Assembly: GCF_006345805.1 (NCBI RefSeq)
Contig: NW_021834191.1
Coordinates: 1 to 51,120, forward strand
Length of the DNA: 51,120 nt
DNA from: Octopus sinensis
Lineage: Eukaryota
Reading direction: 5' to 3'
Within the stretch, counting starts at the first letter, position 1, and every line of letters begins with the position of its first letter. Positions 14,887-18,358 of this stretch are shown piece by piece. The notes under the pieces are model-generated. The model worked only from the letters and a program-made list of their open reading frames with translations. It was not told the origin of the DNA and did not search any database. The position numbers and the translations under genes are program-made.

Positions 14887-17800
14887 TCAACAATAAACGG
14901 AATCCTGCTTAGCCAACTCAAACAGCATCGGAGCATCAAAAAACTTTTTATTACTTACATCTTCAGTCATTCCCTAAAAAATATAACGACACCGCGTACC
15001 TTCCTCCTTCTGGTTTTGACCATGAATTCTCTAGCCAATTCCGTTGCAGAGTGAGGCTCCAAAGGCCTTACAACAATATTTCTATCCGTCGGATCCCCGG
15101 GAACAACCTAGAATCGGACAACAAGCATGACCTGCCAGTGATGAAATACCGACAAACAAAAAGCCTGTCCTTGGGTATGGGTCCGAAGATCAGTTTCAAA
15201 GCCAAAGGAATCGATAGCTGGAATAAAGGCCTTCATTGAATAAAGGGGAGAGCCGCTGACAGGGCAATCAACGGTCACGTGCCCTCTCCGTCTTCCCAAC
15301 ACAAGATATATAGCAGACACACAATCTGCTGGAGAAATAATCTCAGTGTAAAAATAGGGCTCCATCATTCTCGGGGATGCCTATTAAAATATTAATTTTA
15401 TTACTAGCCATCAGAAATGCGGAATATGCTACGCGTCGAGCAGTTGGAATTATTTGTCCTGCTCCACGATAAATTGCCTGTTCAGGAATCACAGCATCGA
15501 GAATTTTGAATTTGACGTTACGAATGGCTAAAATACAAGTAACCATATACGTTCATCGCAAAGTGGTCCTTCTCTGGTCGCCCACTGAAAGCCCTGAACA
15601 ATACTATCTTTCACAGTGGCCATTAGTCGTTTGTCTACTTCTGACGGTAGAGTATCGTCCAATAAAACATTGGGAGATGTGGAATCAGGACCAAATGCCA
15701 TGACGGAACGAGCTGCAAGCAAATCCCATTCGTATTTAGATTGTAGGAATTCTCCCAGCTTCTTCCTCGGCCAATCAAGTCGTATCACCCCTCCCTCGAT
15801 ATCATCAGCCAGTCCCTTCTCCAATGGTTCAGCAATCATGGTAATCTTGCATCTACCAATAAACATGACGTCGCTACTTTTTGTTAGGAGTCTCAGAAAA
15901 GCATTTGAGCGACGAGGTTTCCACCACCGTCTCACAGAAAGTAACCACTGGATCAGCCACTTTAATGTCTAGGACTAACATCCCAGAAATAACCTATTTC
16001 AGAGTACAGTCGTCTCAGATCGTGCATTACACAGTCCAAATACAACTCCCCGGTTCCCAAAACTACATGTTCGCCCGATTCCTCCACTCTCGTAGTCAAC
16101 AGAGGGTAGCTTTTGTTCACCTTCCGAAGTCCATCCAACATTTTAGGAAGTTCTGAAGGGTTTACTGGCTCAACCGCAATTTTGATGACAGAACACGTGT
16201 TGAAGTTAAGAGGGCGGAATATATAAGCCTGTGATATACCAATCTGTCTAACCTGCTGGTCACAGTCTACGATTGTCGAAGTTTTGCTAATTGATGCATC
16301 AATATTTTCAATCATAATCCAATTCCCAGCCGATATTCGCTTTACGCTGATGTTGTATCGTGCCACGGACACAAGGAGACGTCCCACAAACGCCATTTTC
16401 GAGTCCTCCTCGTCCTCCATCGAATAGTTTTCTCCCAAAACACGGACTTGTTGGTTCGAATTAATCGTCCCGCTCATAATACGACCAAAAACGTAGAAAC
16501 TCTTTGCGTCAGGGGTTGGGTATAACTTTGTGCTGTGAATAACTAAAGGCCCCTGGATGTGAAATACAAAGACAAACATTTGGGTCGCATTTTAGCATTG
16601 CTTCGCCTATTTTGTCATGCAAAGGACCGGTGTATGTCGAAACAACCTTGGAACGGGCATTTTCCAAAGGCGAGGGTATGAACTCAACCAACATGTCCAC
16701 AAAACCTGATCTAACAAAAACAGACCATACCACTAAAGGATCTCGAGAACAACTTTTCCATTATAATTTTAAGTAATTCCGAGGTGCTGTTCATTTTCCG
16801 TTCAGTCTTAGAGAGTTTAATTCCCAATTCGTCCGTTAATCGAGGGAAACAAGTATCAACGTCTCCTACAACCTGCGGTCTAAATAATTGTCCAAAACCT
16901 GAGCGAAAATCTTGTAAATAGGATCCAAAATAAAGGCCACAAAAGTCCTCTGAATGCTATGACTCTTCGAAGACGTCTTGAGAGATATTTTGTGACTAAA
17001 AATAATTCAGTAACAAACGTCTTTGGGTTGTAGAAAATATCGCCCCACAGCCGTCTGCTAAAATCAACAGGATCAAAGCCCCCGCCTGAAATGTCAGATA
17101 CAACTCAAAAACCGTAATATTCATGATAAAACTGGGCAAATGACAACAAAGTAAAGCAGAATTTATATTTCGCAGAGGAAAAACATACATTCCCACGAAT
17201 GGGCGACAACAACAATGGTTCCGGATCCTCTGTGTAAAGGCTAAAAATGAATTAAAATTGACATTTTTATTAATAGAAAGTAACAAACCTGACGAGATTG
17301 TTAACTTCGTCTATTATTTGCCTCAGTTTTATATATGCATCACTCGGGGGCAATTTTAGCTCAAAAATGAGTCGGTCAATTTTTGTGATAACCAACGTAA
17401 TGCTTAATTGTTGCTCAACTGCATGGCGCAGTAGCCGCTCAGTGTTCATCATAATCTGAAATAGTCACAAATAGTCTCAACTCCATCTTGTGCATCCACA
17501 ACCAAAACAATCCCATCAGAAATTCGGAAGGCCGCTGTAACTTCGTCAGAAAAATTGACATGTCCGGGTGAGTCAATGATGTTTAGAACATAAGATTTGG
17601 AATTGGAATTCTGCATCAGAATAGTTATGGGAGTGCTTTTAATACTGACTCCCCTCTATTGGCTGACTAGACAATCATATAACCTGTTCTTCCAAAAAAA
17701 GGTGATTTGTAAAATATGGCTAAATTAATTACTCAGCATCAAACTTGCGTTCCTTCACGGGCTCGAAATGTGGGATGAGTCTGTTCGATTAAGCAGTCAA

Positions 17801-18358
17801 TAAATGATGTCTAGAATGAGGGTATACATAATCAACCATTCCGTGGTGAAGGTGTCCGCAAATAGTCACATTCCTCATAAAATACGGGTTGTCCATCAAT
17901 TCAGTCATGAAACTAATAATTTATTTGAATTAAAAAAAACTGGAAATCATAAACGGCCTCTGGGAGTTTAGCCTGTACATGAGAGAACTTCATTGTTCTG
18001 ATTGGTTGGACGATGGGCTCTATAAAAACTAACATTTTTTTGAAAACCAGTAAAGTCTTGGGTGTCCTCTTCACGAGTAAATACCTTTGCTCAATAAGCA
18101 ATAAATAAACCTGGACTTCCTTTCCATAGACCTCCTCAGATAGGGGATAATATTTTTTGTCGTCGTGAAGGATAACTGCCATAGAAGAAGGTTCATCAAC
18201 ATCATTATCCTTAGATGATCATGCAGTGGGACGGGTACTTGATTGTCGTCGTTAGCAATGTCCATTGGCTCGTCTTCGACGGGTGATTGTTCTTCATCTT
18301 CGCTCATCAAATCATCTCCTATGTAATTCCCGTATTCGTCATATTTGTAATCGTCCAT
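14887..18358 (-). CDS. EFTUD2: 116 kDa U5 snRNP component / Snu114 (EF-2-like GTPase); 20 introns, probably 21; about 968-976 aa
   Basis: Acidic N-terminus [14 protein letters not shown]; [76 protein letters not shown]. Removing 20 introns (541 nt) from 3472 nt leaves 977 codons in frame. Confidence 0.97.

Follow-up and report, generated by a model that had tools for sequence, protein, structure and literature searches.

A Snu114/EFTUD2 gene with methionine at the position of the P-loop lysine, on a probable dicyemid contig of the Octopus sinensis assembly

Snu114 (EFTUD2, the 116-kDa protein of the U5 small nuclear ribonucleoprotein) is the only G protein of the spliceosome, and it has long been debated whether it acts as a motor, as a switch or as a scaffold loaded with guanosine triphosphate (GTP). 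The present analysis concerns a Snu114/EFTUD2 gene in a stretch of 51,120 bp, hereafter the window, which is the whole of the unplaced contig VCDQ01002961.1 from the Octopus sinensis assembly GCA_006345805.1. The gene reads methionine where the Walker-A lysine of the P-loop (the G1 motif) is expected.

The closest described protein is human SNU114/EFTUD2 (3jcr chain B, with 67 further entries in the PDB), which has the same acidic N-terminus and five EF2-like domains as the window protein and shares with it the P-loop context GHLHHG-x-T and the motif DxPGH. The two differ in that the window protein has Met for Lys, FTN for YTD, TKID for NKID and DSPGH for DTPGH, and the window gene is set apart from the human one by its 21 introns of 23-48 nt. 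The elongation factors eEF2 and EF-G have the five-domain fold and the G-domain family in common with the window protein, but they are true GTPases activated by the ribosome, with a P-loop of the form AHxDHGK[ST] and without the acidic N-terminal domain. Pseudo-GTPases, e.g., Ski7 of the translational GTPase superfamily, keep the G fold and have lost a motif residue, and the nucleotide is at most a structural cofactor in them. Compared with pseudo-GTPases in general, the window protein has lost one motif residue while the remaining pocket is conserved, as judged from its sequence. A natural Snu114 without the P-loop lysine was not found described in a literature search.

The best functional model is the yeast mutant Snu114-K146A, in which the same lysine is lost and T147 and S190 (here T138 and S175) are intact; the yeast change is an engineered alanine, whereas the methionine of the window is natural and the window variant also has D164N. 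In yeast, K146 is in ionic contact with both the beta and the gamma phosphate, and K146A as the sole copy is viable with mild temperature sensitivity, showing intron retention in 7 of the 11 pre-mRNAs tested (Jia et al. 2020, PMC7192624). The K146A protein is insoluble alone and soluble with the Snu114-binding region (SBR) of Prp8, the mutant Snu114-Prp8 complexes tested have a GTP content comparable to that of the wild type, and the Prp8-SBR abolishes the weak intrinsic GTPase activity of Snu114 (PMC7192624). T147A did not support viability, H218A gave no phenotype, Snu114 is always GTP-bound in structures, and the yeast mutants suggest that hydrolysis is dispensable (PMC7192624).

The splice model of the window gene was built by hand and then checked with a script. 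The reading frame is uninterrupted, with no stop and no frameshift over the 22 exons (2.9 kb of coding sequence). The introns measure 23-29 nt in 20 of the 21 cases (median 26 nt), with a single outlier; their borders are GT-AG in 20/21 and GC-AG in 1/21, and 15 of the 21 donors start with GTT. The GC-AG splice is the only option that keeps the frame there, and its 13-residue product aligns ungapped to human FLMATPRLMEPYYF.

The product scored 1470 bits against human hSnu114 (3jcr_B), collinear over residues 1-966, vs. ~617-626 bits for the paralogue eEF2 and 306 bits for EFTUD1, and the best 120 database matches were all EFTUD2-type. The EFTUD2 N-terminal acidic domain PF16004 spans residues 5-105 and scored 90.7 bits (cut-off 32.2), and PF00009, PF03144, PF14492, PF03764 and PF00679, covering the G domain and domains II-V, were all over their cut-offs, completing the Pfam set (EFTUD2 N-terminus, GTP_EFTU, D2, EFG_III, EFG_IV and EFG_C). 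Identity to the mollusc, annelid, brachiopod, vertebrate and coral orthologues is 65-66%; the protein sits on a long branch, at about the same distance (63-66% identity) from molluscs, annelids, vertebrates and a coral. Full-length and G-domain queries gave nothing nearer than 66% and 60% identity in the protein database, and an exact search with the 205-aa open reading frame (ORF) of the gene matched this contig only. By these measures, the predicted product is clearly a full-length, well conserved member of the Snu114/EFTUD2 family, on the Snu114 side with respect to eEF2. The statement of the first-pass annotation, made from the letters of the window, that the protein is intact and conserved outside the altered motifs agrees with this score and the complete domain set.

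The coordinates of the G motifs and of the adjoining intron are given in Table 1. Codon 137 differs from a lysine codon AAG by one base, at position 17838 (A on the plus strand). The intron that follows it is typical of the 21 introns of the gene both in its length and in its GTT donor. All in-frame GT-AG, GC-AG and AT-AC splices around the site were enumerated, and none of them gives lysine at position 137. The first-pass annotation had read GHLHHGM, ending in an ATG codon at 17837-17839, and then T behind a 26-nt intron, and had held that no GT-AG splice restores the lysine; the gene model bears out the former, and the enumeration extends the latter to two further intron types. The resulting GHLHHGMT does not conform to the motif GxxxxGK[ST] of canonical P-loop GTPases. 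As a pseudo-GTPase is defined by a G fold that is kept and a canonical motif residue that is lost, the protein would fall within this class through K137M, on sequence grounds.

The conservation of the P-loop was analysed in a sample of 342 Snu114/EF2-family proteins in which this region is covered, made up of 120 best orthologues, 102 partial or diverse matches and 120 representatives from clustering at 50% identity, the latter with G domains down to 30% identical to the window protein; the representatives were collected using the Octopus vulgaris orthologue as the query. The Walker-A lysine was present in 342 of 342 relatives, and the full GHLHHGKT in 118 of the 120 best orthologue matches. 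One sequence (P0488), at first sight a second relative without the lysine, is an eEF2 whose P-loop is interrupted by ~215 inserted residues and which does have the lysine.

To test deep conservation, 85 diverse Snu114 sequences, all of full length, were aligned with the window protein in MAFFT. At the thresholds of 100% (10 columns) and at least 95% (53 columns), K137 is the only conserved column changed in the window protein, and at the threshold of at least 90% (85 columns) the changes are K137 and D164. The lineage itself is fast-evolving, since 91 of the 555 positions at which 119 animal orthologues all agree are changed in the window protein. Because K137 (and D164) alone change in deeply conserved columns, the window Snu114, including the remaining nucleotide pocket, appears to be under strong purifying selection; on this alignment, the lysine has been lost with high specificity, contrary to what a pocket in decay would show. 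An enrichment of changes in the G domain was also considered, but 17 of its 84 invariant positions are altered, no more than elsewhere, and the argument from changes in several motifs was dropped.

The readings TKID, FTN and DSPGH reported in the first-pass annotation were all confirmed at their motifs, but the deviations are not of equal weight: K137M stands out, D164N less so, while TKID and DSPGH are ordinary variants. The G4 asparagine is replaced by Thr or Ser in 32 of the 120 cluster representatives, in line with the caveat already attached to that reading, that TKxD works in other GTPases. DSPGH occurs in 22 of the 342 sampled sequences, and RGVSIK of G2 is the majority form among the relatives. 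The aspartate of YTD, the orthologue form given in the annotation, is kept in 120 of the 120 best orthologues and in 78 of the 85 diverse Snu114 sequences. It is lost, e.g., in P0382 (YTN) and P0496 (NTN), which makes D164N rare but not unique. Second in rarity after the lysine loss is D164N, which lies in switch-I and affects the same phosphate/Mg region. The change N253T in G4 requires two base changes (ACA vs. AAY).

All the other elements of the pocket are in place. The spacings S175-H203 (28 residues) and H203-D256 (53 residues) are the same as those of yeast S190-H218-D271, and S175 was assigned to the Mg2+-binding yeast S190 via this spacing to G3 and G4. The equivalents of yeast T147 (T138), S148 (S139), S190 (S175), G217/H218 (G202/H203) and K269/D271 (K254/D256) are kept, and the G5 segment NVCFSS is identical in the window protein and human SNU114. 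The protein has the Thr/Ser of G2, the DxxG with its His of G3 and the [NT]KxD of G4.

The gene is not the octopus copy, as the Octopus vulgaris orthologue (P0026) is 66% identical to the window protein and carries GHLHHGKT. Among animals, dicyemids and myxobolid myxozoans are the only groups with reported introns below 30 bp (PMC13644364), and the median intron of dicyemids is 27 bp (PMC6543705). The genome of Dicyema japonicum, obtained from O. sinensis, has 36.7% GC and 49% repeats, including long interspersed nuclear elements (LINEs) (PMC6736024). The window is comparable, with 30-42% GC and an abundance of LINE and Tc1 elements. Snu114 is its sole conserved gene of host type (Prp8 is not encoded in it), and the remainder is taken up by ORFs for reverse transcriptases and for Tc1/mariner and other transposases. 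An exact look-up of two transposon ORFs of the flanks, made as a test for octopus DNA, returned no match. Because the tiny introns, the GC and repeat content and the cephalopod host agree, the contig is probably a contaminant from a dicyemid, a renal parasite, in the octopus assembly. A non-octopus contig is hereby flagged in the public O. sinensis assembly.

We are moderately confident that the gene encodes a genuine, functional Snu114/EFTUD2 of a tiny-intron animal, likely a dicyemid, in which the Walker-A lysine has truly been replaced and which works as a GTP-loaded, non-hydrolysing protein clamped by Prp8. In the current model, Snu114 is a structural module that is clamped, with its GTP, by the N-terminal binding region of Prp8, and whose hydrolysis is not used. 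Met137 would abolish the salt bridge with the beta and gamma phosphates and with it any residual GTPase chemistry, while Mg-GTP could still be held, with the help of Prp8, by the P-loop backbone, T138, S139, S175, DxPGH, K254/D256 and G5. Methionine may mimic the aliphatic part of lysine, being nearly isosteric with it but uncharged. D164N would take away a nearby negative charge and may partly balance the lysine loss; this aspartate corresponds to the second-shell Mg ligand of EF-Tu. K137M is probably mildly deleterious or near-neutral, and as such could be tolerable, through drift, in a parasite with a small population in a cool-blooded host.

The first-pass annotation had proposed that GTP binding may be lost. 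We infer instead GTP retention and absent hydrolysis in the window Snu114, because yeast K146A is viable, the mutant complexes tested keep their GTP (PMC7192624) and the other nucleotide and Mg ligands of the window protein are retained. Its description as a candidate pseudo-GTPase is apt as regards the lost lysine, but the label adds little to a protein that is already regarded as independent of hydrolysis. For the same reason, the window protein is a natural variant of a known protein and not a new kind of system. If real, the natural loss of the lysine with all other deeply conserved residues kept would be an evolutionary experiment that points to dispensable hydrolysis. It would make the window Snu114 a concrete candidate for Prp8-assisted GTP retention and a possible entry to the adaptation of the splicing machinery in animals with ~26-nt introns.

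Several points weigh against a truly replaced lysine in a GTP-loaded dicyemid Snu114. The whole case hangs on one base (17838) of one unplaced contig in a long-read assembly. The attribution to a dicyemid is circumstantial. The closest database match to the 205-aa ORF of the gene is at most 72% identical, its cluster has a single member, and the metagenome contigs scanned gave no match to an exact pattern in which the key base was set to N. As no like change was found among the 342 relatives, a real substitution would itself be a rare event. Furthermore, the yeast data concern alanine and the window residue is methionine, and the Km of isolated wild-type Snu114 for GTP hydrolysis is ~0.58 mM, which may mean weak nucleotide handling (PMC7192624).

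A true pseudo-GTPase, in which nucleotide binding has been lost or rewired in co-evolution with Prp8 and tiny-intron splicing, is an unlikely explanation. The key ionic contacts with both the beta and the gamma phosphate normally come from the P-loop lysine, and the two rarest changes, K137M and D164N, are both on the phosphate/Mg side. Yeast K146A spared the four atypical introns tested, which include one with a short distance between the branch site and the 3' splice site (PMC7192624), and the splice-site motifs of dicyemids are reduced (PMC13644364). However, T138, S139, S175, DxPGH, K254, D256 and G5 are kept despite the many other changes at otherwise invariant positions, which weakens this explanation because an unused pocket should have decayed. 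The GTP retained by the yeast mutant complexes (PMC7192624) also argues against it, as does the lysine of every other sampled Snu114, in a sample that may or may not include other tiny-intron lineages.

A further reading, which we regard as rather unlikely, is a dicyemid spliceosome with a Snu114 unable to hold GTP in the canonical way, being either nucleotide-free or with the nucleotide held mainly by Prp8, a loss that would be tolerable or even useful as all introns are tiny. This would, if true, be the first case in nature of a spliceosome that functions although its G protein has no canonical nucleotide site.

It is quite unlikely that the normal Snu114 of this animal has AAG (Lys) and that the window shows a miscalled base, an error of the assembly or a deleterious rare allele that entered the consensus. 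Such an explanation would fit a single transversion (ATG/AAG) in a protein that is otherwise perfect at every deeply conserved column, as well as a low-abundance contaminant contig in a long-read assembly that has a cluster of deletions and substitutions at 47019..47735. A rare allele would also be in line with the heterozygosity of 1.24% in D. japonicum (PMC6736024). On the other hand, the local consensus has no indels in the 2.9 kb of coding sequence, though the contig has 1-bp deletions elsewhere (47019..47437). Two of the copies of a 4.1-kb repeat in the window are identical over ~4,050 bp save for one homopolymer cluster, which, because of this near-identity, implies a low substitution error rate. 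An A-to-T change inside a would-be AAA run is not a typical long-read error, and the chance of hitting exactly this base is ~1e-4 or less. None of the 342 database relatives, many of them from rough assemblies, shows such an error. The position of D164N in the same phosphate/Mg region and the two-base change N253T suggest that the pocket has diverged for real; with two bases altered for N253T, the divergence of the motifs is genuine at least in part.

An extra paralogue, i.e., a lysine-bearing EFTUD2 elsewhere in the genome with the window copy redundant, specialised or decaying, is improbable. The view is limited to 51 kb, and the window contains segmental duplications and many transposons, as would suit a duplicated gene. 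Against this, the genome of D. japonicum is reduced, with 5,012 genes (PMC6736024). Moreover, the 21 introns and the ORF are intact and all other deeply conserved columns are kept; the Snu114 region is single-copy within the window, and no second close relative of the 205-aa ORF turned up in the database search.

It is scarcely credible that the mRNA encodes lysine through non-canonical splicing or RNA editing: a shift of the same 26-nt intron by 2 nt, to TG..CT, would yield AAG (GGA-AAG-ACA), and the gene does have one non-GT intron (GC-AG), but read as GT..AG the intron shows the GTT donor and the length that are usual in the gene, TG..CT was dropped as it is not a known spliceosomal type, and no animal editing is known that turns U into A.

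Table 1. Position of the Snu114/EFTUD2 gene, its motifs and the other features of the window
Feature	Position	Strand	Remarks
Snu114/EFTUD2 gene	18358..14887	minus	22 exons, 21 introns, 968-aa product
G1/P-loop, part 1	17837..17857	minus	G131-H-L-H-H-G136-M137
Met137 codon	17839..17837	minus	ATG in place of Walker-A Lys (AAG/AAA)
Intron directly 3' of Met137 codon	17836..17811	minus	phase 0, GT..AG, 26 nt, GTTGAT...TCTAG
G1, part 2	17810..17805	minus	T138-S139 = yeast T147, S148
Switch-I motif	17713..17705	minus	F162-T163-N164 (orthologues YTD)
G2/switch-I	17638..17655	minus	R172-G-V-S175-I-K; S175 = yeast S190, Mg2+ and gamma-phosphate ligand
G3/switch-II	17574..17560	minus	D199-S-P-G-H203, retained
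G4	17386..17375	minus	T253-K254-I-D256; guanine-specificity Asp and Lys kept
Outlier intron of Snu114 gene	17241..17288	minus	48 nt
Lone GC-AG intron of Snu114 gene	15408..15381	minus	28 nt
RVT_1 reverse-transcriptase ORFs	5013..6260, 23784..24713, 41543..42001	minus	LINE-like
Tc1/mariner-type transposase	40118..41101	minus	327 aa, HTH_Tnp_Tc3_2 + DDE_3
DNA-transposon ORFs	29235..29813, 23185..23637, 42978..43313	plus	two fragments resembling the Tc1/mariner-type element; one fragment of an ISXO2-like DDE transposase
420-aa ORF	36963..38225	plus	N-terminal PHD finger; internal repeat (AVFS.DSEDWLRLFCFAPFTLCIPHRRGKEEKSL twice)
4.1-kb element, three direct copies	1..4126, 29598..33723, 47009..51120		99.6-99.9% identity
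Neighbouring duplicate, first pair	4293..5315 / 33715..34717		96% identity
Neighbouring duplicate, second pair	12680..13810 / 34823..35957		98.5% identity
Telomere-like tandem array	45331..45675		60-nt period, unit with GGTTAG/TTAGGG
Satellite	45680..47007		75-nt period, ~17.6 copies
Spurious repetitive ORF in satellite	45664..46221		185 aa

The contig starts and ends inside the 4.1-kb element. Because the segments adjoining this element are also duplicated, the duplicated unit is longer than 4.1 kb and interrupted by insertions. The layout could stem from segmental duplication or from a tandem or circular arrangement, or it could be an artefact of the assembly; many 'circular' contigs have been reported from dicyemid assemblies (PMC6543705). 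The third copy differs from the other two at 47019..47735 by seven deletion events (eight bases, six of the events single-base) and six substitutions. These differences are confined to its first ~730 bp, and the copies are near-identical afterwards. The cluster looks like a locally poor long-read consensus or real divergence.

As regards the mobile elements, one of the RVT_1 ORFs, of 415 aa, is apparently intact over the reverse-transcriptase domain. The 420-aa ORF gave no family match besides its PHD finger and may belong to a retroelement.

The telomere-like array consists of interstitial repeats and is followed by the satellite, which has higher-order periods of 150/297 nt and abuts the third copy of the 4.1-kb element. 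The repetitive ORF listed in Table 1 is a spurious product of this satellite.

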